Source: Prasinococcaceae sp. CCMP 1430 (taxonomy: Eukaryota; Plantae; Prasinodermophyta). Taken from it: DNA of 64,000 nt. Shown here in pieces: positions 1 through 23,303 of this stretch. The DNA is taken from the NCBI GenBank assembly GCA_013416795.1, contig RQSC01001302.1, positions 1 through 64,000 of the forward strand, given 5' to 3'. The translations under genes and the position numbers were made by a program. Positions within the stretch are counted from its first letter, which is position 1, and each line of letters opens with the position of its first letter. The notes beneath the pieces were generated by a model that saw nothing but the letters and a program-made list of their open reading frames with translations, was not told where the DNA came from and did no database searches.

Positions 1-1524
1 GCCAACATGAGCGTCGAGTACCAGCTGAGCGGCCTCACAGCGGGTGCAGAGGTTCCGTACTACTGCATGGAAGACGGCGATGCGTGGCCGTCGGTAGCGG
101 AACCGCAGCCCGTTGTCGGGTCATTCAACGTGAGCAACGCCGTCAAGATCGGCGAGAGCTACGACGCGGCGACCGGCGTGACCATCCGCGAGTTCAGCGT
201 TGATATCGAGATTACCGACGACGAATACATGATGCTCACTGATGGCGGCGAGCCAGACGAAGACTTTGGTGGCCTGATGAACGTGCGCTACTTTGACGAG
301 AAGGAGAGCCTGCACCCGGTGATGATGACGTTTGGTCCCAACATCACTATGGTGATCAACACCTTCTACGAGGAGAGCGTCGATCTTGAAGACTGGCGCA
401 CGCCCAGCAACTGCATTGCGGACGACCCCTACGCCTCGCACACGCCCACTATGATGGGCGAGGATCCGTACATGTTCGACCACAAGCGCCGCAGGCAGTT
501 GCTCGGCCTCATCCCCGTGGAGAACTACGGCGACTTCGTCAACGAGACGTACACCGCGGAGCCCTTTTACGTGCCTGAATGGTTCGACCCATCATTTTCG
601 GGCATCGGGGAAGACGACGACGAATACGACATCACGTACGGCTATGATCTCGTAGAGGGCGAATACATCGAAGGCGAATACACCTATGTCTGGGAGCCCG
701 ACGAGCGTCGCAGCCTGAGCGAAATCGATGCGATCGATGCCGACCTCGCGCTCTGGGACGGGGACCAATCCTCTGACCTAGTGGACGACGTGTTCGCGGA
801 CGGCCCCGCAGCCCTGCGCGAGCAACAGTCGGAATCTCAGGAGGTGAGGGCGCGAAGCCTCCTTGGTCGCAAGAGGAAGAAGAAGAATAAGAGCAAGAGG
901 AAGCGCAACAAGAGGAAGAAGTCGAAGAAGAGTGGACGCAAGTCATCTTCCCCACCGTCGTCGAGCTGCCCCGACTGGTTCCCCACGAACGAGTGCTATC
1001 CCACGGCCATTTCTTATGAGAGGGATTTTGAGTTCAGCAAATTCGAGGTCGAGATTATCACCTGGAAGGACAACTGCGGTATCAAGGAGGCGAAGGCCCA
1101 GGGTGGCAGGTGCCCTGGCGGCGGCGAGCTGTACGGGACCTGCGGTGGGTCGACGCCCCTGCTCTGCCGCGGCAGCTGGGGCTTCCGCTGCGCCATCGGC
1201 TGCGAGTGGAGCTTCGAAGATTTCCTTCCCAACAGTATTAGGAAACATCTCTACAAGTGGTTCAATCTGGACGCCACGCTCTTTATCGAGCTCGGCTATA
1301 CGTACCCCAGCGTCCTTGACATCAAGGGCGGCGGCAAGATCGGCAAAATCAAGAAAGTGTGGTGGGGCGGAAAGAAGGGTGCCGAGGTAGGCTTCGAGGC
1401 CCAGGGCACCCTCGACGTCGCCAAGAAGAAGCTCGGCTTCAAGCTTTCCGTCGGCGGCAAGGCGTGCTGGGGCGGTTGCATCAGTCTGAGCTTCACCGTG
1501 CTCAACCTGTCGCAGAGGTTTTAG
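1..1524 (+). CDS. Paralogue A (5'-partial) of an uncharacterised EF-hand/TM-anchored, RxxL-processed, Cys-rich C-terminal protein family
   Basis: The open frame runs in from the window edge. The protein aligns along its full length with the C-terminal ~500 aa of the 18816..21760 gene, sharing blocks such as FYEESVDLEDWRTPSNCIADDPYASHTPTMMGEDPYMFDHKRRRQL and PLLCRGSWGFRCAIGCEW. The 3' UTR is also homologous to 21761-21910. Confidence 0.85.
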   Translation, partial: ANMSVEYQLSGLTAGAEVPYYCMEDGDAWPSVAEPQPVVGSFNVSNAVKIGESYDAATGVTIREFSVDIEITDDEYMMLTDGGEPDEDFGGLMNVRYFDEKESLHPVMMTFGPNITMVINTFYEESVDLEDWRTPSNCIADDPYASHTPTMMGEDPYMFDHKRRRQLLGLIPVENYGDFVNETYTAEPFYVPEWFDPSFSGIGEDDDEYDITYGYDLVEGEYIEGEYTYVWEPDERRSLSEIDAIDADLALWDGDQSSDLVDDVFADGPAALREQQSESQEVRARSLLGRKRKKKNKSKRKRNKRKKSKKSGRKSSSPPSSSCPDWFPTNECYPTAISYERDFEFSKFEVEIITWKDNCGIKEAKAQGGRCPGGGELYGTCGGSTPLLCRGSWGFRCAIGCEWSFEDFLPNSIRKHLYKWFNLDATLFIELGYTYPSVLDIKGGGKIGKIKKVWWGGKKGAEVGFEAQGTLDVAKKKLGFKLSVGGKACWGGCISLSFTVLNLSQRF

Positions 1525-2553
1525 AACAGCGCAGACACGTCGGCGAGAGTTGAGCGAGGTTTTTTGGCAGGGGGTGTCGGCGCTCTGTGTGCGCGGCTCG
1601 GCTCGGCAGGGCCCTTTGGGCTTCAGCAGCACGCATGCGGGCGGCGGCGCCTTAGGAGCTGTCTCGGGCGGATGAAGTCTCCACCACATTGCCAATCTTT
1701 ACTGTAACACACCTACTGTATGTCTTGTGTGTGCAGGATTGCCGCAGCGTCGCGGTCGCGTGCGTACTCTTCCCGCGCCTGCCTTTTTTTCCGCCTTTCT
1801 TGCCGGCCTTTGGCCGCCTGTGTCGCAACACCGCGGCAGACGATCTCACCGCGAGAGCGTTTTTATTTTTGGTACGCTCCAAAACGCCATCAAAAAGCAC
1901 GCATACCCGGCAACGCTCGAACGAACCGCACGCCTGCGCGGTCTAACAGGTGCCAAGATTCTCCAAGATTTTCCACGCTTCACCGGAGAGGATCACCCAA
2001 CAAGCCAACACGGATTTTTGAGAGTGTGACGTCATTGTTATGGCGCTGGGACACGTGGCTCCGCGGGACGTAGCAGAGCGCGTAATGAGCACTCCCTCAC
2101 AACGGGCTCCTGCGAAGCCTACACAGTCGTGCCAACGGCGCGTTCCTGTCCCTGTCCCCCCGCCACGCATGGTGCATGAGTCCCCCGTGGGTACGTCATC
2201 CGTCGGGGCGCATCCGTCGGATGCGTACGCCCGCTCAGCTCACGCCGCCGCGCCGCGACGCCGCAGCGGCCGCGGCCGTTCCCCGACGCGCGGTCGCGCG
2301 CGCGCAATTTTTCGGTTTGCCCGGCCTGGCGCTGTCGCGTGGTCTTGCACGCACGGCATGTGCTGCTGCGAAGGGTGCGATCACAGTGCGGCATGTGCAA
2401 GTAGGGCGTCCGAGGGATCGCCCCGAGGTGTCCTTTGGCGTGTTTGTTCTCGTCGCGGTGGGCGTGAGAGGGTGGGACTGCGGCGGGGGGAGGTTCGGGT
2501 GTGGATTTCGTTTTTTGTGTGGCGGTTGGGGGGACGGCCGCGGCGCGGCGTTC

Positions 2554-3773
2554 CACGGCGCCGTGGAACGGCGTCGCGCGGGCTTTGGGGTGTCAGGAGG
2601 GTTTGTTGGCGGCTCGAAGAGCGTGCGTGCAGACGTGCGACCTTCGCACGCCTGGGTTTGGGTTGGGACGGAGGCCTGCGCGCAGCGAGGCCGGCGCGCG
2701 CCCTCCCAAGGGCTGGTGCAGCGCGCCGGCGTCGGCGCCGGCCCCCCGGCCGGTGGCGCCTCCGGCGAGGAAGCATCCCCCTCCCCCCCACCCCTCCGGC
2801 GGCGAATGGCCGCGCTACGAGCTCGGAAGCGTGCGAGCGCGCGTGCTGGCGCGTGTCGGCGGGGCAGGAGACGAGACGTGGCGTGTGCGCGTGCGCGCGC
2901 GCCGGGGCGCACGCGCACGCGCGTGGTACGGGCGGGCCGGACGCTTTCTATCTCCCCCCAAATGTTCTCGGCCGGCCGCAGACGGCACGGCCCGCACTCG
3001 CCGTAGTGCGCGCGCGTGCCACAGCGCGCCGCAGGCGCGCGCGCGGCGGCTCGGCACCCCTGCCGCAGCTGCTCGCCCGCAGTCAGCCATGGGGAGGTCG
3101 TCGAGCGATGGGTTCTCGCCTGCGATCGCCTCGATGATCGCGGAGGAGGCCGGCGTGGAGCTCACTCCCGTGCTGGTCGCGGCGCTGGCCGCCAAGGCCA
3201 ACGAGGGGGCCAGCCACGTCGAAATGGGTGAGGGCGCGAGCGCCGGAGCCGCGCACTCGGCTCGCGCGCGTCTGCTGCGCAGCTCCTATTGCTGCGCGCG
3301 CGCGTGGATGGCCGCACGGATGCACGGGGCGGATGCGTGCGCGCGCGCTTGGCCGGCTGCGCGCGCAATGGTGGCGCTCGGCGCTGACGCGTGCGCGCAT
3401 ACGCCGCCTGCCCTCGACGCTCCTCTCCAGTCTCCCTCGCGAGAGAGCTCGGCGCACACTCGACAGGCAAGTCTGCTAGCATGAAGCTCGATTCGTTCCC
3501 GCCGGCGGTGCAGGAGATGCTCCTGGCCTTCGACCAGGACGGCGACGGCACGGTGGATCCCCATGAGATTGGGCGCGCTGCGGAGCTGTACCACCAGTCC
3601 AAGCAGAAGACCAAGCAGCTGGGTCGGCTGGTCTTCTTCCTGTTGATCATGCTCTTGCTCATGCTGGCGGCCATCACGGGCACGACCTTTGCGGTCGTGG
3701 AGCTGAGCAAGGAGACCCACACCTCGAGCGACGGCGTGACGACCGTCGCCGGCCAGGAGGGCGTGGTGGCCAA
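2554..3773 (+). repeat. Segmental duplication, near-identical to 18281..19674 (upstream region, exon 1, intron and start of exon 2)
   Basis: Direct sequence match at offset 15727 (offset 15901 after the extra intron copy). Only a few substitutions in exon 1 and one 55-nt complemented patch differ. Confidence 0.95.
3089..3773 (+). CDS. Paralogue B (3'-partial, runs into the N gap): exon 3089-3227, intron 3228-3430, exon 3431->3773
   Basis: ATG at 3089 (MGRSSSDG...), GTGAG donor at 3228, ctcctctccAG acceptor at 3430, and the frame is preserved into MKLDSFPP. It has an EF-hand-like loop DQDGDGTVDPHE and a hydrophobic helix LVFFLLIMLLLMLAAITGTTFAVV. Positions 3481-3773 are identical to 19382-19674. 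Confidence 0.75.
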
Positions 3774-4484
3774 NNNNNNNNNNNNNNNNNNNNNNNNNNN
3801 NNNNNNNNNNNNNNNNNNNNNNNNNNNNNNNNNNNNNNNNNNNNNNNNNNNNNNNNNNNNNNNNNNNNNNNNNNNNNNNNNNNNNNNNNNNNNNNNNNNN
3901 NNNNNNNNNNNNNNNNNNNNNNNNNNNNNNNNNNNNNNNNNNNNNNNNNNNNNNNNNNNNNNNNNNNNNNNNNNNNNNNNNNNNNNNNNNNNNNNNNNNN
4001 NNNNNNNNNNNNNNNNNNNNNNNNNNNNNNNNNNNNNNNNNNNNNNNNNNNNNNNNNNNNNNNNNNNNNNNNNNNNNNNNNNNNNNNNNNNNNNNNNNNN
4101 NNNNNNNNNNNNNNNNNNNNNNNNNNNNNNNNNNNNNNNNNNNNNNNNNNNNNNNNNNNNNNNNNNNNNNNNNNNNNNNNNNNNNNNNNNNNNNNNNNNN
4201 NNNNNNNNNNNNNNNNNNNNNNNNNNNNNNNNNNNNNNNNNNNNNNNNNNNNNNNNNNNNNNNNNNNNNNNNNNNNNNNNNNNNNNNNNNNNNNNNNNNN
4301 NNNNNNNNNNNNNNNNNNNNNNNNNNNNNNNNNNNNNNNNNNNNNNNNNNNNNNNNNNNNNNNNNNNNNNNNNNNNNNNNNNNNNNNNNNNNNNNNNNNN
4401 NNNNNNNNNNNNNNNNNNNNNNNNNNNNNNNNNNNNNNNNNNNNNNNNNNNNNNNNNNNNNNNNNNNNNNNNNNNNNNNNNNNN
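3774..4484. other. Assembly gap (711 N)
   Basis: Run of N. Confidence 1.
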
Positions 4485-4758
4485 GGCGGGGCGGGGGCGG
4501 GGGCGGGGTCAGGGGCGGCGTACCCCGTCCTGCCGCGACGCGGCGCGGAGGGCGCGCACGAGAGCACGCGCGAGGCCGAGCGGCCCGCGCTGTGCGCATC
4601 AAACCCGACGGCAGCCGTGTGCACCGAGCGCGGGCGCTTCCTGGCCGCGGGCGGCACTGCCGCCGAGTACGACCGCGAACACAACGAGCGGTGCTACGAG
4701 ACGCGGCCGCTCTGGCAGTGCATCTACGCGTAGCGCGGCCGCGCGCAGGGGACACGCG

Positions 4759-6733
4759 ATGGCGGTGGCGCACGCGTTCGTGCAGCGTGTGGTCATGAGC
4801 GCACCGGCGGCGCTGAGCGCCTGCCTCGCGTTGGCAGCGGCGGTGCTCACGCCCGGCGTGGGCGCCGCGCTCGCTCTTCCGCCGCGCGGGCCGCTGTGGG
4901 CGCTCGCCGTCGCGTACGCCGGTGCGCGCGCAGGCGGCGCAGCCGCCGCAGCCGCGCGCGCGCCGCCGCTCGTTGGCATGCTCCTCGCAGGCGCGCTACT
5001 ACGCAATGCGGCGCCCGCGGCATCCGCGCTGCGTGACGGCATGCCCGCCGCGCTGGCGTCCTTCGCCCGATCGCTCGCCCTCGCCGTCATCCTCGTGCGT
5101 GCCGGCCTCGCGCTCGATGCTGGCGCGGTGCGCGCACTCGGTGGCGCGTGCGCGAGGCTCGCCGCGTTGCCCGCACTCGCCGAGGCTGCCGCAGCGGGCG
5201 GAGTGGCCTCCGCGCTCTTTGGCATGGACGCTGCGTGGGCCGGCGCGGCGGGCTTCATGCTTGCGGCCATCTCGCCGGCCGTCGTCGTGCCGGGTGCGCT
5301 TGCGCTCGCCGCCGAAGGCTACGGCGGCCGCGCGGATGGCGGCGACGTGCTCGCACTCGTTACGGCGGCCACGCCGCTCGACGACGCGCTCGCCATTGCA
5401 GGCTTTGGCACGTGCCTCGCACTCTCGAGCGCCGGCGCGGGCGGCGGAGCGGCCGCGGCCGCGCTCGCGCCTGCAAAGTTGCTCGCGGGCATCGCCTCAG
5501 GGATCGCGCTCGGCGGGGCGGTCGCACTCGCGCTGCCGCCCGACGGTGAAAGTGACAGCGTTGGCACCGACCGACCGGCAGAAGCAGCAGTAGGGGGATG
5601 GCGAGCGCGCTCGCGTGCGCTTGCGTGCGCCGCGCTGCACGGGGCGCGCGCCGCTCGCGGCGACGAGGTGGCGTCGCCGTCGGCGTTGGCGTCGGCGCGG
5701 TGCGCGCTGCTGTCTCTCGCCGCGCTGGCAGGAGTGCTCGCCAGCGCCGAGCTCGACTTTGGCGGCGCTGGCGCGCTTGCCGCGCTCGCGGCGGCCGTCG
5801 TCGCCTCGGCCGCGTGGGGCGGCGCCGCGAGCGACCCCACGCGCGCCGTCGCTGCACGCGCCGCCGCGCTGTGGAACGGTGCCGTCGGACCTTTGCTCTT
5901 CGGACTCGTAGGCGCCAGCGTCGACGTGGGCGTCCTCGATGGGACGACGGTTGCGCGCGGGCTCGCCGTGCTCGNCTCCGCCGCTGGCCCTTCCCGCCCG
6001 CTCGTACATGGCGGCCGTCGCCGCCTCGGCCGCGTGGGGCGGCGCCGCGAGCGACCCCACGCGCGCCGTCGCTGCACGCGCCGCCGCGCTGTGGAACGGT
6101 GCCGTCGGACCTTTGCTCTTCGGACTCGTAGGCGCCAGCGTCGACGTGGGCGTCCTCGATGGGACGACGGTTGCGCGCGGGCTCGCCGTGCTCGCCGTGG
6201 GCGCCGCCACGCGCTTTGGCGCCGTGATGCTCGCGACGACGCGGGCGCGCCTGTCTTCCCGGGAGCGCCTCTTCGTTGCCCTCGCGTGGATCCCAAAGGT
6301 GCGCGCGCGCGCGAGCGACTTGCCGTGCGAAAAGCACCAGAGGCTCTCTGCGCGGCACTGACAGGTTCTCGCCACCACCGACGCACCCATCGTGCAGGCG
6401 ACCGTGCAAGCCGCGGTCGGCGGCGCGGCGCTTGAGGCCGCGCGCGACATGGCAGAGAGGGCCGTGGCGAGGGGTGATGCGACCGCTGTTGTCGTCGCCG
6501 AGCGCGCCGAGGAGCTCGGCCTCGTCCTGCTCCAGCTATCAGTCCTGGCCATCGTGCTCACCGCACCTGTGGGCGCAATTGCCATCGCCGTGGGTGGGCC
6601 CAGGTTGCTGGAGCAGAAAGGGAGCGGCTGCGACGACGAAGAGGTGGGCGGGGCCACTGAGATCACAGCAAAATGCGACAGCGACGGTGCCCGCGAGGAC
6701 GGCTCCACCACATCCAGCGCGGAGCGGCTGTAG
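4759..6733 (+). CDS. Na+/H+ antiporter, SLC9B/NHA2-like (CPA superfamily); intron 6299-6397; true start may lie in the gap
   Basis: Motifs GMLLAGALLRN, LALAVILVRAGLALD, LAAISPAVVVP, GYG, TPLDD, LLFGLVGASVD, ERLFVALAWIPK|ATVQAAVGG and VLAIVLTAPVGAI match the NHA family. The GT..AG intron restores PKATVQAA. The frame is broken by a duplicated read overlap at the N at 5975. Confidence 0.8.
5790..6194 (+). repeat. 185-bp direct duplication (5790-5974 = 6010-6194) around the single N at 5975; probable scaffolding overlap artefact
   Basis: The two copies are near-identical at offset 220 and are separated by an N plus 34 unrelated nt. Confidence 0.85.
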
Positions 6734-6962
6734 CAAACGATGGCGACCAGAGAGTGGGAAACGGCGCCTTGGGCCGGCGAGCTAGCTCGCGTCGACGAAA
6801 TGACCAAACTCCCACGTGGCTCTGGGTCGCGAGAATGCCCACGCTCGCGCTCTGATCTGGGCAGCCTGCGTGTGTACAAACATCACATGTTGATTACATA
6901 CTGTACATACAGCCCATTGTACAACGCGCAAGACGGCGCTCCACACGCGCGCATGCTGGCGC

Positions 6963-8272
6963 TCACGCCGCCCATAGGCTAGGGACCTCGACGATGACAC
7001 AATCGTCGGGCAGCTGCGCGCGTAGTTCCGCACCGAGCTGGCAGCCGACGGAGACGGCGGCAACCAGCGACACGCGCTCCTGGTCACACAGCGCGGCGAG
7101 CGACCGCCCCACAGACGATGGCGAGCCTCCGCCCGCCGACTCTGCGTGGGGCACGATTGGTGCGGCGACACGCGCACCCAGCGAGCTTTGCGACAGGTGG
7201 GACGGGGTCTGCGGCGAGTCCACGCTGCCACCGCTTTGCAGCTGATACGGCCAGAGCGCGGAGGCGGCATACGAGAACCCCCTGCCTGTGGCAATAGCCG
7301 CTACCGGTGCGGCGGCCGCCACAGCGCGCGCCAACGCGCCCGCTGCCACGCCAGCAGCCATGCCACCCGCCGAGACCGCCGAGCTCGCGGCAGCGCCTGA
7401 CATTCCGGCGGCCGCGTGCAGGACGGTGGCGGCCCTTCCCGCACCCGAATACCTACAGGCAGCGCATTGCGGCAGTGTCAGCAGCAACGACTGCATTCGA
7501 AGCGGATGCCTTCACACGCGGCGCACCGCACGTACTCTGCAAATGCCCCCACGGCCATGCCAGTCGCGTCTGCCGTGAGTTTCACGGCCGTTGCCGTCGC
7601 CGCAGCAGCTGCGCTCGCCGACGCGCTCGCCGTCGCCGCTGCCGCCTCAACTGAGAGTGCCGCTGCAGCGCCGAGCGCCGTCGACGCCGCGGCAGTGGCT
7701 GCGGAGCGCGCTGCTGCACTCGTGCTCGTAGGCACGGGCGCCATGAGCGCACGCGGCCGCGAGCCGTTCGCGACGGCCTTGCACGGGCTTGCCCCACGCG
7801 AGTCGTCGAGCGTGACTGTGCGGCACGCTGTGGACTGCGGCAGCTCGCTCGTAGTCACACACTCTCCCTCAGTTTCCGCGCCCCCGCTAAACAGCGAGGA
7901 GAGCTCCGAGCCGCTTGTTCCAGCAGGCCCGGCGCTCGCACGCACAGAGGCCACATCACCGCCGTCACTGCCCCCGCCAAGGCTGCTGCTGCTGTCCCCG
8001 CTGCGCTCGCCCACGTCGCGCCGCAGCCAAAGCGGAGCGGCGCCGAGCGCGGCCAGCGCCGCGGCCACGCGCCGCGCACCGGCGCACCCCACAACTACCA
8101 CGCCACCCCCGCGCAGAGCAGCGCCGCCCGCAGGCGACAGGAAGGCAGGCAGCAGCTCCGCGAGCGCGCGCTGCGCGCACGCGAGCTCGGCCTCCAGGTG
8201 TGCTGCCTCCCCTCCCGCCTCCCCGTCGGCGCTTGCTCGCCGGCGCGGCTGCTCAGCCGGCGCCTCGGGCAC
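6963..8272 (-). CDS. Hypothetical Ala/Ser/Gly-rich protein (two overlapping ORFs needing a frameshift or intron near 7480-7500)
   Basis: ORFs 7478..8272 and 6963..7496 have coding-like codon use. No family was confidently recognised. Confidence 0.3.
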
Positions 8273-8450
8273 GGCCGCACGCGGTACACGCGCGGCCGGG
8301 CCGCAAGCGGCGAGCTATGCAGCAGACGCTGGACATGCTCATTCAGCTGAGCAGCCCGATGGACGACTGGTATGACTCCGACGGTCCCGACGAGTACTTC
8401 GAGAATGCTGAGGCCGNGCCGGTGGCGCCGCAGAGCGCTGGCGGCGCCGC

Positions 8451-9257
8451 ATGTGGACGCCGCGCGACAGGTGGCACGCGCACGCCCTCCTCGGCGGTGC
8501 GTCGGTGGCCTCCGCGGGTGCGGTGTGCGCTGCGTGGGCGTGGGCGGACGCCGCGGCACTGCTTGCGCTCCCGCCGGCGCTGCCGCAGGCCGTTGAGCTG
8601 GAGGCGCCTCTCTCGCTCGTATCGCTGTCAACGGGACTGCTCTGCGCCGCTGCCGGCGCACCGCTGTGCCGCACGGCGCGCAAGGCCGAGCTCTCCGCGC
8701 GGTCGGCAGCGCTGCTCACGGCTCTGTCGCTCGAGGGCGCACGGCTACTTCCTGGCGCCGCGGGCGCCTCCTTCGCCGCCGCGGACGGCTGGATTATGTA
8801 TGCAGCGGCGCTTCCGCTCGTGTGGCAGTGCGCGACGAGCGCGTACATCATCGCAAGGGCTGGCGAGACGGGCGACGACCGCCGCGCAGCCATCGGGGTG
8901 CTTGCCGGCGTCGCGCTGCTGGCGCTGCAGCTGCTGCCGATTGCGTACGCGGCGGGGCTCTCCCCGGGGGCGTCGGTCGACGCCGTGCGCGCGGCGCGCC
9001 CGGGGCTCGCGGAGACGTGGCTGCACGGCTCGGTGGGCGCCGCGGGGGTCGTCGGCTGGAGCACGCTGGGCGCGTCGGCGCGCTCGCGCGGCGTTATCGG
9101 CGATGCCGACTTCCTCGCCGGCTTCGTCCTTCGCCCGTCGGCGGCTTGGCTGGCGCTCTTTGCGCTCGACTGCGCCGCGAGGTGCCCGTGGAGCTCCGCG
9201 GGCGAGTACCTCGCGACGGCCGCAGGCGCCCTGTCGGGATCCCTGCCGCCGCTGTGA
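8451..9257 (+). CDS. Hypothetical multi-pass membrane protein
   Basis: A 268-aa ORF with several hydrophobic segments (e.g. AAIGVLAGVALLALQLLPIAYAAG, WIMYAAALPLVWQCATSAYII). The 5' end is uncertain because of the N at 8417. Confidence 0.4.
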   Translation: MWTPRDRWHAHALLGGASVASAGAVCAAWAWADAAALLALPPALPQAVELEAPLSLVSLSTGLLCAAAGAPLCRTARKAELSARSAALLTALSLEGARLLPGAAGASFAAADGWIMYAAALPLVWQCATSAYIIARAGETGDDRRAAIGVLAGVALLALQLLPIAYAAGLSPGASVDAVRAARPGLAETWLHGSVGAAGVVGWSTLGASARSRGVIGDADFLAGFVLRPSAAWLALFALDCAARCPWSSAGEYLATAAGALSGSLPPL

Positions 9258-9844
9258 GCCCGTGGGGCACTGCAGGCGAGCACGTCACGCGCGCCACCAC
9301 GGCCGCCGGCGCCGTGTCGGGGGATCCCCCTGCCGCCGCCCGCAGAGCACCCGCGCGCGCCTGCGTGCATTTTGACATACACATTAAACCCTAATACGTT
9401 AACCTCAAAACCCACACCCAAAGCCGCGCAGTTTTTTCTTTTCGCGCGAATTTCAATCGCAAAATCTTTTTTTTATAGCCGCCCGGCCGAGATCTCGGGG
9501 ATCCCCGCGGCGCGCCGGCGCTGGGTTCCATGCGCGTCCGGCGCTCTCCCGTGGTTTATCACATGTGTTTAAACCACATAATGGATTCAACTGTACATGG
9601 ATTCCATCTTTCAAAATGGAACCCATCCCTTATCCACTTCCTACAGGGCGCGCACGCGAGCGCCAGGCGGGCGAGATTGGGGGGTGGGGGCGGCGGGGCG
9701 GCGCGCTGNGCGCAGCGGTTGTGCGCCGCAGCCTGCCGCCTGGTGCAGGCGGCGAGGTCTCTGGGGACCTGAGAGGCTCGGGGACAGCGCTCGATGGTCG
9801 CTGACCCTCGCGCGTGGGCGCGCCCGCGCATACGCGCCCAACAG

Positions 9845-10828
9845 GACCCGCGCGACGTGACTGAGGTGACCATGCAGCCCGTCCGCCGCTACGACATCGA
9901 CGCGGCCATCCTGTTTTCGGACATCCTCGTGGTCGCGGAGGCCCTCGGCACGCGCGTCGAGATGCCCGGCGGCGTGGGCATCCAGGTGCCCGAGCCGCTG
10001 CTCTCGCCAGCCGACATGTCTAAGATTGCCATGGACGGCGTGGACGTGCGGGACAAGCTGGGCTATGTGGTCGAGTCCGTCGAGAGCATCGTGGGCGCCA
10101 TCGCCGCCGAGGGGCGCGGCGTGCCGCTCATCGGCTTCAGCGCGGCGCCCTGGACGCTCTTCTACTACATGGTGGGCGGATACGGCGCGCGCAACACGGA
10201 CGCGGGGATGCGCTGGCTGCGCGAGTACCCGGCGGACGCGAAGATGCTCATGGAGGTGCTCACCGTCACCGTCATTGAGTACCTCGACGAGCAGGCCAAG
10301 GCCGGCGCCGAGATGCTGCAGGTGTTCGAGGCGATGGGCAAGCACATCACGCCCGAGGCCTTTGACGACTTCGCGCTCCCCTACCTGCAGCGCATCGCCG
10401 CGGAGATGAAGGAGCGCCACCCGGACGTGCCGCTGCTCGTGTTCACACGCGACGCCATGTACGCCAACACGCGCATGCAGGAGGCCGGCTACGACGTCGT
10501 CACGCTGGACCTCTTTGCGGGGCGCGAGGAGACCCGCGCGGCGCTCGCCGCCGAGGCGGCGGCGCGCGGCGCCCCGCCCGCGGCCGTGCAGGGAAACTTC
10601 GACCCCAAGCTGCTGTACATCGAGGGCGGTGCCACGGACGCCGAGCTCGAGGCGGCCGTGCGCGGCATGCTGGGCGACTTCGGCCCGCAGGGTCTCATCG
10701 CCAACCTTGGCGAGGGGCTCAGCGGCAAGGAGGACCCCGCCAAGGTCGACAAGTTCGTCAAGCTCGTGCACAGCGTCTCGGAGGAGCTCATCGCGGAGAT
10801 GGGCGCCAAGGCGGGCATCGCCGCCTGA
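9845..10828 (+). CDS. UROD: Uroporphyrinogen decarboxylase, 5'-partial (N-terminal RQAGR exon absent)
   Basis: Motifs [51 protein letters not shown] and IANLGEGL. Acceptor aacAG at 9844 with a CTGAC branch upstream. The upstream exon was probably lost at the N at 9709. Confidence 0.9.
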
Positions 10829-12372: not shown

Positions 12373-15300
12373 ATGGCGCCCCGCAGCAAAGGCAACGGCG
12401 CGAAGGACACCGAGACGCCCGCCGCGCCGGGGCCGGAGCAAGTGAGCCCAAGCGTGGCTTCGGCCCTGGTGCGTGGCGATGGCGCGCGGCCGCCCCGCAT
12501 GCGCCGCAAGCCGGCCCGGACGCCCGTCTGAGGCCGCCGGCCGCAATCCACACGTACCCTTTCCGTGCCCCGCCGCCCCGCCGCCCGGCCGCTGCGAGCG
12601 AGCGAGCGCCCCATACGTCTTCTTCCGGCGCCTCCGGCGCGGCCTCGTTCCTGGCCACCGGCTGACTCTCCCCGCACCGCGACCACGCGAATGCGCAGCG
12701 CCGCTTCGACACCTTCAAAGGCGACGACGACGAAGCCCTTGCCGCCGAGTTGAAGGACGCGCACGAGACCGCCAGCATGCTCAAGAACGCGCAGCGGAAC
12801 GACGGCTCCATCGAGCTGCAAGCCTTCCCCGCGGCGGTCCGAAGCATTCTGGAGGCCTTCGACGTCGACGGCGACGGGAGCGTGGCACCTGTGGAGCTCG
12901 CGCGCGCCGGCGAGCTCTATCAGGCGGAGAAGCAGCGCTCCGGTCGCCTCAAGCAGCTGGCGATCGCCCTCGCGGTTCTGATGGCCTTCGTGCTGGCGGC
13001 CGTCACCGGCCTCACCTTCTCGGTGGTCGAGCTGAGCAAGGAGACCCACACGCGGGAGGACGGCGTGACGTTGGTGGCGGGCACTGGTGGCAGCAGCACC
13101 GGCACCGTGGCCAAGATGGCGCCCGTCGCGCAGCCGCAGGTCCTGTCGAGCTGGCTGCCCGACGAGGCGTTCGCCACGCTCGAGACCTTCAAGGCCACCA
13201 GCCCAGGCGGCTCCCACCTCGAGATGGACGTGCTCGGGTGGTACCGCGTGAACGAGACCGACTCGGAATGCAACATGTACGTGAGCATCGTCACCTACTC
13301 GGGCGTCATCCGCCTCAAGGGCGAGGTGATGACCTTCGAGCCGCTGGTTGGCAACGCCTTTGCAGAGGCTGGCTTTGAGGTCGACGCCAGCGGCCGCCGC
13401 TTGGCGTCGGTGTACGACCTCATTGGCCTCTTCAATTCGATCGAGGAGTGGGTCATGCTCGACCCCTGCGCAGACAATCGGCCGCCTTCCTTTGGCAGGA
13501 CCGATTTCGTGATGGAGTACGACGTCGAGTACAAATGCTGGGGAGATGAGTGCACGGACATCGAGGGCCACGCGCACGGCGCGATGAATGCCGACGGCAC
13601 TGCGCTTGTGGTCAGCCACCGCGCCGAGTACGATCTGCACATCGGGGCGGTGCTCGAGTCCTTCACCAACCAAGAGTTCAGGGGCTACGAGGGTGCGGCG
13701 TCGCGTCAGTATATCTACAAGCACGCAGGCGTCGAACTCGAATACCAGCTCACCGACGGCGATGGTACGTTGCTGTGCCTCTCGGCGCTGCCTCTGGACT
13801 CGCTCGCACGGGCGAGCACCCGCACAGCACGGCGCCGCGCCCTCGATGCGTGTGTGCCTGTTCGCGCACCGATCTAACCCCCATCGCTCCGACGCCCCCT
13901 TGTGCACAGCGTTCTACTGCAAGTCATCCATCGACGAAGAGGCCGTCGCTCGGGCGGCGGAGTCCACGCCGGGAATCGCTGGTGATTTCGACGTCTCGAA
14001 GGCGGTGCAGGTGTCGCGCAAAGTGGCCGATGATGGGCGCGTCCTCCGCAAGTTCGAGATCGTCGTCGAAGTCGATGCCGTCGAGTACGCGTTGCTGACG
14101 AATGACGGCGACGGACGGAACTTTGACGCAAACCAGACCTTCCTTAACCATACCATCGTCTACATTGACGAGGCCGAGACGGGCAACCCGGTGGAGTTCC
14201 GCCTAACTGAGAATATCACCATGAAGGTGACCAGCTATTTTGAGTACCCTGTCGACCTCAGCAGCCATGCGATGCCCAACTGCGTCGAATGCAGTGCCTA
14301 CAAGCCTGAGTGCCCCTCCAAGCTGCCCCAGACAGCGTACCTGTTCGACTTCAAGCGCCACGATCAGGAGGCTGGCATTATCGACGCCGAGTTACTACAA
14401 GCGTACAGGGACGGTACCTCCGCTGTCATGCCGTACTATGCGAAAGACCTGATCGACGACGTCGTGGAGGGTAGGATCCATCCTGTTCCGAATGCGACAC
14501 GGCGCAGGCTCGTCGAGGACACGCTCGACGGCGAGCCCGAGGAGCTCCAGGACCGCGGGCTGGACGTGGCCACTGCGCGCCAGCCCCGCAAGCGCGCTCG
14601 GCGCGCAACCAGCCGACGCGGGAGGAATCTGAGCTTTTTCAAGAAGAAAAAAAAGAAGAAATCAGCATCCCCCTCTGGATCAGATGTGAATGTTGGCATC
14701 GTCAACGATTATCTTTTCGCAGAAGACCAGGGTTTTGATGATCCCTACCCATTCCCCCCTCCTGTATGCCAGTCAATGTCGTATATTATATGTCCGTGGG
14801 ACGGCGTCGGCGACGCTCTACTGAACACCGGCGCTGACTTAGTCGGCGACTGGATCGACGAACAAGAGGCCAAGTTCAGCGCCTCTGGTCAGGACTTTTG
14901 GTCGACGGTGGTCGGCACGGCAGGTGACGCACTCACAGACACGATGGAAAACTTTGGTGTTGGAAAGTGCTGGGGAAGTAACCACTTGCCCGTTGATCCC
15001 GATCCAGAACCAGAAGAAGTTAATCTTGGTCTCGTGAAGCTCGAGATGCAATACTACAAGGGCGCTGCCTGGTGTGGAGTCCACAACGTCGATATTTCCG
15101 GTGGGCAGTGCCCGTGGGGGGGCGTGGTATTCGCCTCATTCACAGGCAAGACGCCGGCGTTGTGCGGCGTTACGACGTGCAACATGAAGCTAGAGGCGGA
15201 GCTGGGTTGCAGGTGGGACTTGATGCAAATTTTCAAGAGCAAGGCCCCCGCCCTTGTCAAGCCCTTAGAAAAAGCCGGGGCCCAGGCAACGCTCGAGTTC

Positions 15301-15555
15301 AAGTTGACATACGAGTACCCCGCCAGCCTCGGCCTGGCGGTGGAGGGCGAATTCAAGTTGTTGAAATGGTTCAAGATACCTTTCACCAAGAAATATCTTG
15401 AAACGGGCATTCACGTCAGCTTCGAAGCAAGCGGCACAATTAACTTGGCTGATCGGTACTTGCAATTGAGGGCCGGTTTCGGCGGCAGGGCATGCATTGC
15501 CGGGATCTGTTTCGGCGTTTCTATCACCTTGGCGTCGCCGGCATTCACTTTTTAG
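12373..15555 (+). CDS. Paralogue C (divergent) of the EF-hand/TM proprotein family; exons 12373-12441, 12699-13764, 13910-15555
   Basis: The GTGAG..CAG and GTACG..CAG introns join the ORFs in frame. EF-hand loop DVDGDGSVAPVE, TM LAIALAVLMAFVLAAVTGLTFSVV, the same ELSKETH...DGVT motif as B and D, RRL/RNL sites, and a Cys-rich C-terminal domain (GGQCPWGG, CRWD, RACIAGICFG). Confidence 0.85.
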
Positions 15556-16049
15556 GTATTGTTACTCGCGGCACGGCCCTTTCGCCGCAATACAGACCGC
15601 TGCCTGCTCCGACAGGCTACTACTTTGAGCCCAGGCGCGTGCGCTAACGCACAGGCCGTAAGACATCGACACTTATGGCAGCGTGCGGCAAGCTCAGTCG
15701 AGCTGGAGTCGACAGAAGACGACAGACTGAAAGATGCAATCGTTCGCCGCGCGCCTCCCGGCAGCCGCGTGGCAGTTGGATGCGGCCCGGACGTGGCATG
15801 CATCGGCCGACGACGCAGCACAGCTGCGGCTGGCTCGCCGCGCGGCAGCAGCGGTGGACGTCAGCCCTTTTGTTTTACATGCCTGAACTGTGTGTAGTAC
15901 TGCTGTCACGTACGGCGCACGGGAGTGCATCGAAGTACCCTGTGACTCAGGCATGACGCGCCTGCGCGCGCGTGCGGGCGTGCGGGCGTACCAACGCGTG
16001 CGCGCGTGCGCGCACAACTGGCCGCACGTTCCCTTCCCCCTTCCCCATC

Positions 16050-16960
16050 AATTTAGAGAACGTATCCACGCGCACGACGCGCTCCTCGACGCCCATGGAC
16101 GGGTAGCTCGGCGGCAGCGCCGCGTCGGGCGTGGACGCCGTGGAGGCGTGCGACGCCAGGCGTGGACGCCGTGGAGGCGTGCGACGCCAGGCCGTACCAT
16201 CCTGGCATCGCCGCCTCGTTCGCAGCGTTTCCGCTCTCGCCCTCGGCGGCGGCGTCGGTGCACTTTGGCCATTCGCCGCCCGTCTTTCCGAACGCTGCGT
16301 ACAAGGACGGGTCGTCCTCCAGCAGCAGCAGGTCCTCCTCGCACGCGGCCGCATATGTTGCACGGCGCGTCTCCGCCGACGCCGACACGCCGGTGGGGTT
16401 GTGCACCGTCGGGATGACGCAGTAGGCCTTCGGGCGCGGGCCGCGCGCGCGCAACGCGGCGCACGCGTCGCGCACGGCGCGGGCACAGTGCGTGCGCACA
16501 AACGCGACGGTCACGCCGCGCGCCTGATGCGGGCGGAGCGCGCTTATCGACGTGAGGAAGTTGCTCTCCTCGACGAGCAGCACATCGCGGGGGGCAAGCA
16601 GCGCCACGAGCACCTTGTCGAGCGCGTCCGAGTTGCCGCACGTGCGCAGCACGCGTTCCTCGAGGGGCGCGGGTCCGGCCGCGCCGCCTCCCTCGGGCGG
16701 CGCGTGCAGCATGCGCACGTGCGCGCACACCCAGTCGAACAGCGCCTGATAGCACCTGAAGATCATCTGGTACTGCTGCATCTTGTAGGCCTCGTCGTTC
16801 CTGCCGGCGTGTCCGCCCGCCGCCGCGCCGACGTGCGCGTCGCATGCATCATCTTGATGCGCAGCGACGCGAGCGGAAAGGCGTCGCTCGGCGGGGTCCC
16901 GCCCGCGAGCCACACGGAGCGCGGGTCGGCGAGCATTGGCACGAGCGAGAGCGACAGCAG
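16050..16960 (-). pseudogene. PLP-dependent class I/II aminotransferase (2-aminoadipate/aromatic transaminase-like), frameshifted and C-terminally truncated
   Basis: Motifs VWLAGGTPPSDAFP, GNSDALDKV, VLLVEE, IPTVHNPTG, LLLLEDDP and RVVRVDTFSK are split over three frames. There is a frameshift near 16850 and a 31-bp tandem duplication at 16128-16189. No PGLR-type continuation follows FSK. Confidence 0.6.
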
Positions 16961-17800
16961 GCTCGCGCGCGCCGCCGCAACGGGCGCCAACGGGCCCGCA
17001 TGGCGCGCGCGCCACGCCCCGGCGCCCGGCACCACAAGCGCACGAGAGCTCTCTCTCACACACCGTCTCCTTTCAGCGCACGCCTGGGCGTGGCGTGCCA
17101 CTGCCACGGTGCGTGCCCGCCGCTCGCGCGCAGGGGCGACGCGCGCGGCCCGCGCTTCCCTGCCGTCGGAGGGGCGTGTGGCCCCGCGCGTGGGCGCTCG
17201 CACCTCTGCCAGTGCCGCCCGCGCGCTCGCCCCTGTGGCCCACCGACGGCCCTGCCCCTGCTCTGCCCCCTCCTCCGCTCCGCTCAATTCGTTTTGACGG
17301 CGTGATCCAAACGCAGGCACACAAACGTCGCAGCCAGGCGTGTGCCGCGGGCGCTGCCTCCTTCGCCCGACCCTGGATATCAGAAGATCTAAAATATGCT
17401 CAAAGACACCCACGGCTGCCTCCGATTCCTCGTGTGGATCGACGTGTGGATTCGTTCGATTGCACTGCGTTCCCGTGCGGCCTCTCAGTCAGGGTCCGAA
17501 CACGCACGCATCCGCATCCAGTAGTGATCGTGGCTGGGCAGGCTGGGTTGGTTGGTGTGCCCAGGTTGTGCTCGTGCACCCGACCGTTTCACGCCCTTCC
17601 CCTCCCACCCTGCGCCAGGGCCGCGTGCCGGCCGGGCTGGCGTGAGGGACGGACGGCTCCCACCAGCCAGTGCCGCGGCGCCTGGCCGCGCGGGCCGCGC
17701 GGCGCCCGTATTCAGCGCGTGACGAGCCTACGATGCACTGCGTCAAACATATGCGTCGCGCGGCGCCGTCCCTTCGCCCCACCATCGGGCCGGATGCAGG

Positions 17801-17985
17801 CTCGACGTGCGTTCTGACGACGCGTTTCACTCTAGCGTTCTTTTTGATGTGCTGTGCGTGCTCGACGTGCATTCTGACGACGCGATTCACTCTAGCGTTC
17901 TTTTTGATCTGCTGTGTGTGCTCGGCGTGCATTCTGATGACGCGTGTCGCCATTGCTTTCGTTTTGATGGGTCGTGGCCACGTGC
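17801..17985. repeat. 60-bp minisatellite, about 3 units (third degenerate)
   Basis: ctcgacgtgc(g/a)ttctga(c/t)gacgcg... recurs at 17801, 17861 and 17921. Confidence 0.9.
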
Positions 17986-18815
17986 GCGCCGCGACGGTGT
18001 GCGAGCATAACAACCGCAACGGGCGAGACGTCATTTGGCATGCGAGCGCCCGCGCGCGCGCGACGAACGAAACGCGGCGTTCCCCGACGCGTGCGCGCGC
18101 GCGCGCGATTTTTTGGCACCGCGTCCGATGCTCTTGCCTTTGGGGTGTGTGCCCGAAGGGCTTCCCCATGGCGTTCTGAGGGCGCCTTTTGACGTGTGCA
18201 CAGGATCGACGGCAAGAGTGGGAGGTGGGGCGAGGTTTGGGTTGACGGGCGCCGCGCCGCGACGCCGTGGCGTGGCGTAGCACGGCGCCGTGGCACGGCG
18301 TCGCGCGGGCTTTGGGGTGTCAGGAGGGTTTGTTGGCGGCTCGAAGAGCGTGCGTGCAGACGTGCGACCTTCGCACGCCTGGGTTTGGGTTGGGACGGAG
18401 GCCTGCGCGCAGCGAGGCCGGCGCGCGCCCTCCCAAGGGCTGGTGCAGCGCGCCGGCGTCGGCGCCGGCCCCCCGGCCGGTGGCGCCTCCGGCGAGGAAG
18501 CATCCCCCTCCCCCCCACCCCTCCGGCGGCGAATGGCCGCGCTACGAGCTCGGAAGCGTGCGAGCGCGCGTGCTGGCGCGTGTCGGCGGGGCAGGAGACG
18601 AGACGTGGCGTGTGCGCGTGCGCGCGCGCCGGGGCGCACGCGCACGCGCGTGGTACGGGCGGGCCGGACGCTTTCTATCTCCCCCCAAATGTTCTCGGCC
18701 GGCCGCAGACGGCACGGCCCGCACTCGCCGTAGTGCGCGCGCGTGCCACAGCGCGCCGCAGGCGCGCGCGCGGCGGCTCGGCACCCCTGCCGCAGCTGCT
18801 CGCCCGCAGTCAGCC

Positions 18816-21760
18816 ATGGGAAGGTCGTCGAGCGATGGGTTCTCGCCTGCGATCGCCGCGATGATCGCGGAGGAGGCCGGCGTGGAGCTCACTCCCGTGC
18901 TGGTCGCGGCGCTGGCCGCCAAGGCCAACGAGGGGGCCAGCCACGACCAAATGGGTGAGGGCGCGAGCGCCGGAGCCGCGCACTCGGCTCGCGCGCGTCT
19001 GCTGCGGAGCTCCTATTGCTGCGCGCGCGCGCTTGGCCGGCTGCGCGCGCAATGGTGGCGCTCGGCGCTGACGCGTGCGCGCATACGCCGCCTGCCCTCG
19101 ACGCTCCTCTCCAGCCACGTCGAAATGGGTGAGGGCGCGAGCGCCGGAGCCGCGCACTCGGCTCGCGCGCGTCTGCTGCGCAGCTCCTATTGCTGCGCGC
19201 GCGCGTGGATGGCCGCACGGATGCACGGGGCGGATGCGTCGCGCGCGCGAACCGGCCGACGCGCGCGTTACCACCGCGAGCCGCGACTGCGCACCGCGCA
19301 TACGCCGCCTGCCCTCGACGCTCCTCTCCAGTCTCCCTCGCGAGAGAGCTCGGCGCACACTCGACAGGCAAGTCTGCTAGCATGAAGCTCGATTCGTTCC
19401 CGCCGGCGGTGCAGGAGATGCTCCTGGCCTTCGACCAGGACGGCGACGGCACGGTGGATCCCCATGAGATTGGGCGCGCTGCGGAGCTGTACCACCAGTC
19501 CAAGCAGAAGACCAAGCAGCTGGGTCGGCTGGTCTTCTTCCTGTTGATCATGCTCTTGCTCATGCTGGCGGCCATCACGGGCACGACCTTTGCGGTCGTG
19601 GAGCTGAGCAAGGAGACCCACACCTCGAGCGACGGCGTGACGACCGTCGCCGGCCAGGAGGGCGTGGTGGCCAAGACGGGCCCCGTAGCGAGGCCGACCA
19701 AGCTGAGCAGCCTGCTTCCCGACAGCGCCTTCCAGTCGCTGGACATCTTCGTGGTGGACTCGCCGACGGGCGCGCACCTGGAGCTCAACGTGCTCGGATG
19801 GTACCGCGTGAAGCCCACCGACAGCATCTTCGACGAGTACGTCACCATCATCACCTTCTCGGGCAACATCAAGCTCAAGGGCGAGTCTATGCAGTTCGAG
19901 CCGCTGGTTGGGAACGCCTTCGTGGAGGCTGGCTTCGAGGTGCGCGCCGGCGGACGCAAGCTGCACGGCGTGTACGAGATCATCGGCCTCTTCAACTCGA
20001 TCGAGGAGTGGGAGGGCCTCGACGTTGGCGAGGGGCCGCCCATGTTCGGCCAGTCGGACTTTGTGATGGAGTACGACGTCTTCTACAAGTGCAACGACAG
20101 GTGCTACACCGAGGTCTTCGAAGACACCCTGAAGTCAATGGTAACCACCGAGGACGGCGACACCGCCGTAAAGATCTCGCGCACGGCGCATCACGACGTG
20201 CACATCGGCGCGGTGCTCGAGTACACGGTGAACCCCGAGTTTGAGTACAGCACCAAGGTGAGCTACATGGCTGCCAACATGAGCGTCGAGTACCAGCTGA
20301 GCGGCCTCAGTCGCCCACGTCTCCAAGGCATGATGACGTACCTTCTGCCGCTACGCACCGGCAGAGCCTCGGAGCCGCAGCCCGTTGTCGGGTCATTCAA
20401 CGTGAGCAACGCCACCAAGATTGGCGAGAGCTACGACGAGGTGACCGGCGTGACGATCCGCGAGTTTAGCATTGACGTTGGGATCAACGAAGCCGAATAC
20501 ATAATGCTCACTGATGGCGCCGAGCCAGGCGACGACTTTAAAGGCCTGTTGACCTTGACCTACTTTGACGAGAAGGAGAGCCTGCACCCGGTGAAGATGA
20601 AGATTGGCCCCAACATCACTATGGTGTTCAACACCTTCTACGAGGAGAGTGTCGATCTTGAAGACTGGCGCACGCCCAGCAACTGCATTGCGGACGACCC
20701 CTACGCCTCGCACACGCCCACTATGATGGGCGAGGATCCGTACATGTTCGATCACAAGCGCCGCAGGCAGTTGTCCGGCCTCGTGCCCGTGGAGAACTAC
20801 GGCGACGCCGCCAACGAGACGTACATCGCAAAGCCCTTCTACTTGCCTGACTGGTTCGACCCATCGTTCCCAGGCATTTTGTCGGACTACGACGACTACA
20901 CCTATGACTACGCGGATGACGGCGAGGCCGTGCGCCGCACCCTGAGCGAAATCGATGCGATCGATGCCGACCTCGCGCTCTTGCTCGGTGACTCACCGTC
21001 TGACATGCTGGATGACGAGTTTGCGGACGGCCCCGCGGCCCTGCGCGAGCTTGATTCGGCGTCTCAAGAGGTGAGGGCGCGGAGTCTCCTCGGCAGGAGG
21101 AGGAGGAGTCGGAACAAGAACAAAAGGAATCTGCAGTTTTTCAAGAAGGCGGCCAAAAAAGCGATGAAAAAAGCGGTTACCAACCCAACCACGCCTTATT
21201 GCCCGGACGATTGGCCAGCGGACACGTGCTATCCAGACTTAAGTCATACTGAGAAGGGTTGGCAATTCGGCAATTTCGAGTTTGAGATGCACACCTGGAA
21301 CGGCGGATGCTTTATCAAGGAGGCGAAGGTCTCCGGTGGCCGGTGCCCTGGTGGGGGCACGCTGTACGGGACCTGCAGTGGAACGACGCCCCTGCTCTGC
21401 CGCGGCAGCTGGGGCTTCCGCTGCGCCATCGGCTGCGAGTGGACCTTCGAGAACTTCCTCCCTAACTGGATCGTCAATGCTCTGAAAGGCGTTGGCCTGA
21501 ACCTGGACGCGACGCTCTTCGTCGAGCTCGGCTATTCGTACAAAAGTACCTTTGACCTCAAAGGCGGCGGCTCGATTGGCAAAATCAAGAAGGATTGGAC
21601 GGGCTGGACGAGTGGCGCCGAGGCAAGCTTCGAAGTACAGGGTAGCATCAACGTTGCTACCAGGAAGCTCGGGGTCAAGTTTGCCATCGGCGGCAAGGCG
21701 TGCTGGGGTGGGTGCGTCTCTCTGAGCTACACCGTGGTCGACCTTTCGCAGAGCTACTAG
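18816..21760 (+). CDS. Paralogue D (complete) of the EF-hand/TM proprotein family; exon 18816-18954, duplicated intron region 18955-19331, exon 19332-21760
   Basis: Same exon 1 and splice sites as B, followed by a long open exon with EF-hand, TM, RKL/RRQL/RRTL/RSLL/RNL sites and a Cys-rich C-terminal domain. Confidence 0.85.
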
Positions 21761-22506: not shown

Positions 22507-22543
22507 GTGTGTGCGTGCGTGCGTGCGTGTGCGTGCGTGTGTG

Positions 22544-22587
<44 letters not shown>

Positions 22588-22662
22588 CGTGTGTGTGTGT
22601 GTGTGTGCGTGCGTGTGTGTGTGTGTGTGTGTGTGTGCGTGTGTGCGTGCATGTGCGTGTGT
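22507..22662 (+). repeat. (GT)n/(GTGC)n microsatellite, intronic
   Basis: Seen directly in the sequence. Confidence 0.95.
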
Positions 22663-22702
22663 CAGCACGTCAAAGGCAGTGGTCAGCCCGCCTGCTCTGC
22701 AG

Positions 22703-23091: not shown

Positions 23092-23129
23092 GTGCGGAGG
23101 GACAGCGCGCGGGCGGACGGATGGTGGTG

Positions 23130-23303
<174 letters not shown>

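Follow-up and report, generated by a model that had tools for sequence, protein, structure and literature searches.

Among the closest described systems to the proteins presented here are the substrates of site-1 protease (S1P), a subtilase. ATF6 and bZIP17/28 are type II proteins in which an S1P cut is followed by intramembrane proteolysis, and RRLL is the S1P site of the Lassa virus GP-C. The plant S1P/SBT6.1 substrates (pro-pectin-methylesterases, RALF23, and bZIP17/bZIP28) and the animal SKI-1/S1P substrates (ATF6 and arenavirus GP-C) have in common that they are secretory or type II proteins with R-[RK]-L-[L/x] motifs in exposed lumenal segments and with several sites between folded domains. 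Plant pro-pectin-methylesterases are processed at RKLL, RRLL, and RRKL motifs, and RALF23 is a substrate of S1P/SBT6.1 (10.1101/2022.07.28.501549). S1P-like subtilases are present throughout the Archaeplastida, and bZIP17/28 are cleaved by such an enzyme (PMC6713707). Here, we describe a protein family with similar features that is encoded in a 64,000-nt stretch of DNA (hereafter, the window) from the alga Prasinococcaceae sp. CCMP 1430 (contig RQSC01001302.1, positions 1 to 64,000, forward strand). A tblastn search with relatives over the whole 64 kb placed the family at 1-1521, 3454-3771, 12696-15552, and 19355-21757 (copies A, B, C, and D) and gave no family match in the remaining sequence.

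The family differs from the known S1P substrates in that there is no sequence homology, cleavage of the algal proteins is a prediction, the motif lies inside a conserved module common to ~1,500 clusters, and the cytosolic part is an EF-hand and not, as in the type II substrates, a transcription factor. The family profile, compared with 1.84 billion cluster representatives (clusters defined at 50% identity), matched 1,529 proteins at E ≤ 1e-3, of which 576 reached E ≤ 1e-10. Nearly all of the 1,529 share only profile positions ~30 to 280, which cover an EF-hand, a transmembrane (TM) helix, a juxtamembrane domain, and an RRL loop; about half of our local set of relatives extends through the domain that follows. 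This EF-hand/TM/juxtamembrane module defines a large, unannotated, and mainly green-algal superfamily of surface proteins with ~1,500 clusters. Downstream of the constant module, the ectodomains vary and include WSC, CUB, Hint, and Laminin_G_3 domains. Carriers of such domains are P0005 (PRCOL_00002424), P0014/P0168 (PRCOL_00004389), P0054, P0032, and P0046.

Named sources of the relatives are Prasinoderma coloniale, Pycnococcus provasolii, Pseudoscourfieldia marina, Pyramimonas, Cymbomonas, and Gonium pectorale, together with one Symbiodinium record and some short contigs from "bacterial" metagenome-assembled genomes, which are probably mis-binned. A feature search of the ESM Atlas returned diatom clusters (score 0.96), which we take as a lead only, and word-based homologue searches with the N-terminal module and the C-terminal domain gave nothing beyond close relatives. 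P0001 (792 aa, 93% identical to D) and the A-type P0002 (804 aa, on the TARA scaffold L003) are each an intact single open reading frame (ORF) on a 3-kb contig. P0003 is 58% identical, the PRCOL paralogues share 45 to 55% identity, and a protein of Cymbomonas tetramitiformis (KAK3254773.1, P0186, 864 aa) is 32 to 34% identical across the full architecture. The family is real, expressed (see below), and lineage-restricted, and its architecture is newly resolved.

The order of the parts is best followed along copy D, which has two exons and encodes 855 aa; its exon 2 shares 95% identity with L001 and L002, the Logan contigs that encode P0001. Residues are numbered as in P0001, whose first Met corresponds to the Met at 19382 in D. 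The features of D are as follows:

18816-18954, forward strand: exon 1, by homology to exon 1 of copy B, with the same donor
19332-21760, forward strand: exon 2, a single ORF to the stop codon
19433-19468, forward strand: EF-hand loop DQDGDGTVDPHE
19529-19600, forward strand: TM helix (signal anchor)
19949-19969, forward strand: GGRKLHG loop, candidate subtilase cleavage loop
20000-20701, forward strand: LolA/ependymin-like domain
20702-21091, forward strand: disordered acidic linker with KRRRQL (20756-20773), RRTL (20933-20944), and RARSLL (21074-21091)
21092-21172, forward strand: polybasic run
21185-21757, forward strand: Cys-rich all-beta C-terminal domain with 10 Cys and Tyr as the last residue

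A first-pass annotation, made from the letters of the DNA, had read the copies as type II precursors with an EF-hand-like loop and one TM helix, and our data agree with the topology, the loop, and the helix. Residues 18 to 29 (DQDGDGTVDPHE in B and D, DVDGDGSVAPVE in C) match every position of the canonical 12-residue EF-hand loop, D-x-D-x-D-G-x-[IV]-x-x-x-E. In the Pfam scans of all copies and relatives, the EF-hand (PF00036/PF13499) was the only match of the window copies and stayed below the cut-off of 25.4 bits (D, 18.4 bits; C, 13.1 bits), while relatives exceeded it (P0005, 39.7 bits; P0043, 38.9 bits; P0014, 32.2 bits); the ectodomain and the C-terminal domain were unmatched. The TM helix (residues 50 to 73, KD19 score of 2.7) is the sole hydrophobic segment and is preceded by Lys/Arg and followed by acidic residues. 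Since all sequons and all Cys lie C-terminal of the helix and relatives carry the extracellular-type domains WSC, CUB, Hint, and LamG after the module, a type II (N-in), single-pass topology with the EF-hand end facing the cytosol is well supported, and the proteins are predicted to be glycoproteins. Gating of the protein by Ca2+ through this EF-hand, as also proposed at first, is speculation. N-myristoylation of the N-terminus, MGRSSSD, was considered and set aside, since the Arg after the Gly violates the PROSITE pattern.

The stretch between the TM helix and the polybasic run had been taken for one long acidic pro-region, which does not fit the structure prediction: in an AlphaFold2 (AF2) model of residues 95 to 560, built on a 101-sequence alignment, ~345 residues are folded. 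The mean predicted local distance difference test (pLDDT) score is 76, with values of >90 through most of the folded part. In order, the model has a small beta domain, a helix, the GGRKLHG coil, a helix (VYEIIGLFNS), and a beta-rich domain (residues 207 to 440); residues 473 to 560 have a pLDDT of <50 and are disordered. Hence, as modelled, two folded domains would make up most of the "acidic pro-region", and an acidic, disordered linker of ~130 residues with a net charge of −18 would come after them.

Residues 207 to 440 are confidently modelled as an unclosed antiparallel beta-barrel (half-barrel) of the LolA/ependymin type. Foldseek found LprG, EPDR1, RseB, LolA, and VioE at E values of 5e-5 to 1e-3 (probability of 1.0), VIA gave Z scores of 11.7 (2yzy), 10.3 (sponge EPD-BCP1), and 10.2 (LolA) for model residues 113 to 346, and the structure search of the ESM Atlas returned LolA and LppX clusters (LolA TM-score of 0.64 to 0.66 by the match); the feature search of the Atlas with this part gave nothing usable. 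The algal domain has the unclosed barrel of ~230 residues in common with LolA, LolB, LprG, RseB, EPDR1, and EPD-BCP1 and is, like the ependymins, predicted to be extracellular and glycosylated. In contrast to these proteins, with which it shares a fold at 6 to 13% identity, it is one part of a membrane-anchored multidomain protein.

The R-x-x-L sites of the first-pass annotation are located in segments predicted to be exposed, GGRKLHG (SGRRLAS in C) in a coil of low pLDDT and KRRRQL, RR[ST]L, and RARSLL in the disordered linker. The block with GGRKLHG has a pLDDT of 60, compared to 77 and 88 in the blocks on either side. Across an alignment of 95 superfamily members, the consensus of the juxtamembrane loop is [G/R]-R(92)-[R71/K15]-L(90)-[L/A/Q/S]-G(60)/S(19), with the numbers of sequences given after the residues, and no other element of the module is as conserved as this R-[RK]-L loop. 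Downstream of the module, 58 relatives (37,400 aa) contain R[RK]L 71 times, compared to 12.5 ± 3.5 times in shuffles (5.7-fold), and R[RK]L[LM] 20 times, compared to 1.1 times. The reversed tripeptide L[RK]R was not enriched (17 versus 12 in shuffles), Leu is 3-fold over-represented after R[RK], and [KR]R as such is 1.9-fold enriched. Non-homologous linkers contain extra R[RK]L sites, as does an insertion within the C-terminal domain of P0028, P0033, and P0050. The motif is thus above chance, dependent on residue order, and placed in the loop or in disordered linkers, which bears out the earlier reading as an S1P motif; the enrichment supports processing by an S1P-type subtilase without proving it, and we consider such processing plausible, at roughly even odds. 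What is not supported is that only the Cys-rich domain is released: the best conserved site (R in 92 and L in 90 of 95) is the one next to the membrane anchor, and the first predicted product is therefore the whole ectodomain. The idea that a diversifying Cys-rich effector is set free is less likely than the rest of that annotation.

The C-terminal domain itself is largely as first described, with ~190 aa, 10 Cys, and an aromatic last residue (F/F/Y in A, C, and D). Six of the Cys vary little or not at all in an alignment of 15 sequences. The domain ends in F or Y in A, C, D, P0003, P0186, P0015, P0035, and P0023, and in another residue in P0028, P0050, P0008, and P0033. The AF2 model has ~10 long antiparallel strands, with a pLDDT of 80 to 86 in the last 80 residues, and in the sequence, hydrophobic residues alternate with polar or small ones along the strands. 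The profile of the domain had no match among PDB sequences at E ≤ 1 and none in Pfam, and the ESM Atlas feature search gave unnamed clusters only. Compared with 48,161 chains by VIA, the model had membrane beta-barrels only as its top matches (BrkA and KdgM, Z score of 10.0; then AIDA-I, OmpG, FhaC, PapC, and TamA/BamA, Z scores of 8 to 9.6), and the Atlas search agrees. A dimer prediction scored 0.01 (mark, 0.32), which carries no weight for or against oligomerization. In the distant relative P0033, four Cys-containing repeats of ~45 aa (residues ~525 to 722) follow the C-terminal beta domain in tandem, with the consensus C.A.CY.NRYADLK..LGNDIA.AK.HW.D.G..EGR.PTC.

Our model, to which we assign an even chance of being correct, is that the proteins are type II surface proteins that are cut by an S1P/SBT6.1-type enzyme at the R-[RK]-L loop and further in the linker, and that the paralogues arose by local duplication. 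A subtilase of the secretory pathway would cut the loop, and the cut would either shed the ectodomain from the EF-hand/TM stub or leave both halves associated. Additional cleavage at the sites in the linker, and perhaps in the polybasic run by a kexin-type enzyme, would part the LolA-like domain from the C-terminal beta domain. The former may, by analogy, carry a hydrophobic ligand, and the latter, which is amphipathic and Cys-rich, may bind to a membrane or the cell wall. The paralogues would derive from local duplication, with the 5′ halves kept alike by gene conversion or recent duplication and the 3′ halves diverging under purifying to relaxed selection.

Several observations weigh against this model. 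The enrichment was controlled by composition-preserving shuffles and not by secreted proteins of the same organism, and conservation of the R-[RK]-L loop could instead be structural or due to ligand binding. The polybasic run (net charge of +14), which the first-pass annotation had placed before the C-terminal domain, is indeed present in A, C, and D, but it is absent in the Cymbomonas relative and hence not universal. The LolA-like assignment is by fold only, with no match to the Pfam families LolA, LppX_LprAFG, or Ependymin at E ≤ 1 and none of the ectodomain profile to PDB sequences at E ≤ 1. The model of the C-terminal domain is only moderate (pLDDT of 74, 15 sequences), and Foldseek found nothing for it at E ≤ 1e-3 among PDB and viral models (best E, 0.1).

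If the loop is structural or in contact with a ligand, the proteins may be intact, unprocessed type II receptors or adhesins, in which a lipid- or wall-binding ectodomain is linked to a cytosolic Ca2+-binding tail. As expected of a structural element, the flanks of the loop are conserved too (F..AGF before and G-[LF]-F-N after it), and relatives carry the adhesion- or sensor-type domains WSC, CUB, and LamG. However, the loop is modelled as a flexible coil, and a single structural role does not account for a tripeptide that is ~6-fold enriched at many non-homologous linker positions, including the insertions in the C-terminal domain. We therefore regard intact receptors as unlikely, although they are the strongest of the alternatives.

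Less probable still is that kexin/furin-type cuts at dibasic sites of the polybasic run free only the Cys-rich domain, with the acidic linker as a charge-neutralizing propiece. The charges invite this comparison: the run has 14 K/R in 36 residues and immediately precedes the domain in A, C, and D, the linker has a net charge of −18 against the +14 of the run, and [KR]R is enriched, so that an acidic segment, a strongly basic segment, and a disulfide-rich C-terminal domain follow one another as in precursors of the pro-defensin type. However, the algal C-terminal domain is nearly neutral (net charge of −1) and has ~190 aa, and the basic run is a separate linker. No other segment is less conserved than the run (A and D are 36% identical here), which is also missing in the Cymbomonas relative, and R[RK]L shows a far stronger enrichment, which depends on the order of the residues.

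We also entertain, as a long shot, that the C-terminal domain is a new, disulfide-stabilized beta-barrel like those of outer-membrane proteins, which, once freed from the acidic linker and the LolA-like carrier, inserts into a membrane as a pore-forming or anchoring effector, the constant module being a Ca2+-linked launch pad for varied ectodomains. The target membrane could be that of a competitor, a grazer, a virus, or a mating partner. The nearest solved shapes are indeed outer-membrane beta-barrels and autotransporter beta-domains (BrkA, AIDA-I, EspP; VIA Z scores of 8 to 10), with 130 to 156 residues aligned at 4 to 5.5 Å; long amphipathic antiparallel strands and an aromatic last residue are common to both, and the layout of anchor or signal, passenger, and C-terminal beta domain is reminiscent of autotransporters. 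Autotransporter beta-domains are closed barrels of 12 strands; ~10 strands are predicted here. In contrast to the bacterial barrels, ten Cys are conserved in the algal domain, and the protein has a type II signal anchor of the eukaryotic kind and would travel the secretory pathway, where outer membrane and BAM machinery are lacking. Because there is no sequence relation, no significant Foldseek match, and a moderate model, the predicted resemblance to membrane beta-barrels is one of shape class and not of membership.

Very improbable, finally, is a juxtamembrane S1P-type cut as the first step of a regulated intramembrane proteolysis that frees the EF-hand tail as a cytosolic signal: the topology with a lumenal R-x-L-type site is that of ATF6 and bZIP17/28, and the EF-hand, TM helix, and RRL loop are constant across the superfamily while the ectodomains vary, but the site lies ~120 residues from the membrane, not ~20 to 40, and the Pfam scan found no DNA-binding or other effector domain in the tail.

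The first-pass annotation had further claimed a conserved pro-region next to a diverging mature domain. A 5′-to-3′ gradient is seen: the amino acid identity of A and D drops from 85% in the LolA-like domain to 72% in the linker and 36% in the polybasic run and is 63% in the C-terminal domain. However, the gradient is present at synonymous sites as well, with a synonymous divergence (dS) of 0.03 in the 5′ module (L003 versus L001, i.e., A-type versus D-type contigs) and, for A versus D, of 0.12 in the LolA-like domain, 0.45 in the linker, and 0.34 to 0.52 in the C-terminal domain. Since dS rises in parallel with divergence, the pattern reflects, at least in part, a mosaic or gene-conversion history as much as selection. 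The ratio of nonsynonymous to synonymous divergence (dN/dS) of A and D is 0.4 to 0.87 across regions and exceeds 1 in none. With a regional maximum of 0.84 to 0.87, positive selection on the C-terminal domain has no support at the level of regions, and neither has the term "diversifying". Between strains, the folded domains of both A-type and D-type proteins have a dN/dS of ~0.3 to 0.6, which indicates that both types are maintained.

Although the family is present at all four loci, only C and D are complete, and the earlier count of four paralogues needs to be qualified: A is a 3′ part, and B consists of the first 160 codons only, nearly identical to D. Copy C has three exons and 926 aa, with introns predicted from GT..AG boundaries, reading frame, and homology. 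Copy A is 98% identical to L003, which encodes the full-length P0002, and is covered to 1713 by a metatranscriptome contig (X17, see below). The features of A, B, and C are as follows:

1-1524, forward strand: copy A, last 507 codons plus stop codon, 5′ part left of the window start; its translation holds the remainder of the LolA-like domain, the acidic linker, the polybasic run, and the C-terminal domain
484-501, 706-717, and 847-864, forward strand: KRRRQL, RRSL, and RARSLL of copy A, 5′ of the polybasic run
865-942, forward strand: polybasic run of copy A, GRKRKKKNKSKRKRNKRKKSKKSGRK
952-1521, forward strand: Cys-rich all-beta C-terminal domain of copy A, last residue F
2533-3088, forward strand: upstream region and 5′ untranslated region of copy B; a duplicate with 98.6% identity precedes D at 18261-18815; the RNA contig begins at 3021
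3089-3227, forward strand: exon 1 of copy B (MGRSSSDGF...); the ATG at 3089 is the first ATG of the RNA contig
3228-3430, forward strand: intron 1 of copy B, GT..AG, removed in the metatranscriptome contig X17 (joint 3226/3430, cut +1, 203 nt skipped)
3431-3773, forward strand: exon 2 of copy B up to the gap, with EF-hand, TM helix, and first ectodomain residues; frame open at the last base, 3773
3774-4484, no strand: assembly gap, unbridged
12373-12441, forward strand: exon 1 of copy C, predicted from a GT donor at 12442 and an in-frame join
12699-13764, forward strand: exon 2 of copy C, with a degenerate and a canonical EF-hand (canonical loop, 12861-12896), TM helix (12957-13028), juxtamembrane domain, SGRRLAS loop (13389-13409), and start of the LolA-like domain
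13910-15555, forward strand: exon 3 of copy C, with the rest of the LolA-like domain, linker, RRRLVE (14500-14517), polybasic run (14587-14661), and a longer Cys-rich C-terminal domain (~14767-15552) ending in F

Promoter, exon 1, intron, and the start of exon 2 of B are a near copy of those of D (96 to 98.6% identity between 2533-3773 and 18261-19674), and 3394-3693 is 100% identical to 19295-19594. To see how B continues, we compared 1-5974 with four sequencing runs, a DNA run of the organism and three that are RNA or RNA-like. None of them contained a contig that spans 3774-4484; a DNA contig of the same organism extends 463 nt past 3773, and another has 540 nt before 4485. There is no family homology in the right flank of the gap, and the estimated 711 N are too small for the ~2.1 kb still required to complete B. 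For these reasons, B is not countable as an independent full-length member.

X17, a 2,858-nt marine metatranscriptome contig, contains in this order 3021-3226, 3430-3773, 598 nt absent from the window, and 1-1713, with 32 differences from the window in 1,713 nt. In D, the corresponding points also lie 598 nt apart, and we therefore take X17 as the mRNA of an A-type gene in a related strain. The contig demonstrates transcription and splicing of the family, and the ATG at 3089 is the first in this mRNA and in frame with the main ORF. X17 is compatible both with B and A as two tandem genes and with a single gene that mis-scaffolding or the collapse of a tandem repeat has split.

The ORF of D holds 20 residues that fit no relative. 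A compensated frameshift was considered as the cause and rejected, because the residues stem from one of two patches in which the sequence is the plain complement of another part of the window:

20310-20364, no strand: assembly artefact of 55 nt in D, exact plain (unreversed) complement of 38-92 in A, not the reverse complement
19240-19294, no strand: second 55-nt plain-complement patch, in the D intron, exact complement of 3339-3393 in B

Once both patches are read as complement, D matches its relatives. They are data-processing artefacts of assembly or polishing software, and the same artefact may recur elsewhere in the genome and break other ORFs. The D intron also contains a 174-nt tandem duplication (18937-19065/19111-19239) that is absent from B, L001, and L003, and 43 nt of the B intron (3296-3338) are missing from a DNA contig of the same organism and from L001/L003. 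Both adjoin 55-nt patches, and hence, the local assembly is unreliable. A 185-nt direct repeat (5790-5974/6010-6194, 99% identical) lies on either side of a single N at 5975, and further single-N positions (8417, 9709, 23248, and 39374) look like stitched contig joins.

The window has a GC content of 58 to 73% (2-kb bins) and contains eukaryotic, spliced genes, and its sequence is present in marine runs; the family copies are interspersed with unrelated genes, and no protease gene is found within the cluster. Between B and C, an ORF at 9794-10825 (forward strand) has a full-length match to uroporphyrinogen decarboxylase (URO-D, E of 3e-81). Directly downstream of D, an ORF at 22270-24120 (forward strand) has a match to hexapeptide repeats (PF00132) and overlaps short-period G-rich tandem repeats (22444-22706 and 23069-23363; GC skew of +0.18).

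In sum, the family would put a lipid-carrier fold of the LolA/ependymin type on the green-algal cell surface, and it contributes a new Cys-rich beta domain, to which membrane barrels are nearest in shape. The predictions are open to N-terminomics, and the alga is culturable. If the R-[RK]-L loop is a subtilase site, the module would be a common means of these algae to display and shed varied ectodomains, and S1P-type proprotein processing would extend from land plants and animals to early-diverging green algae.

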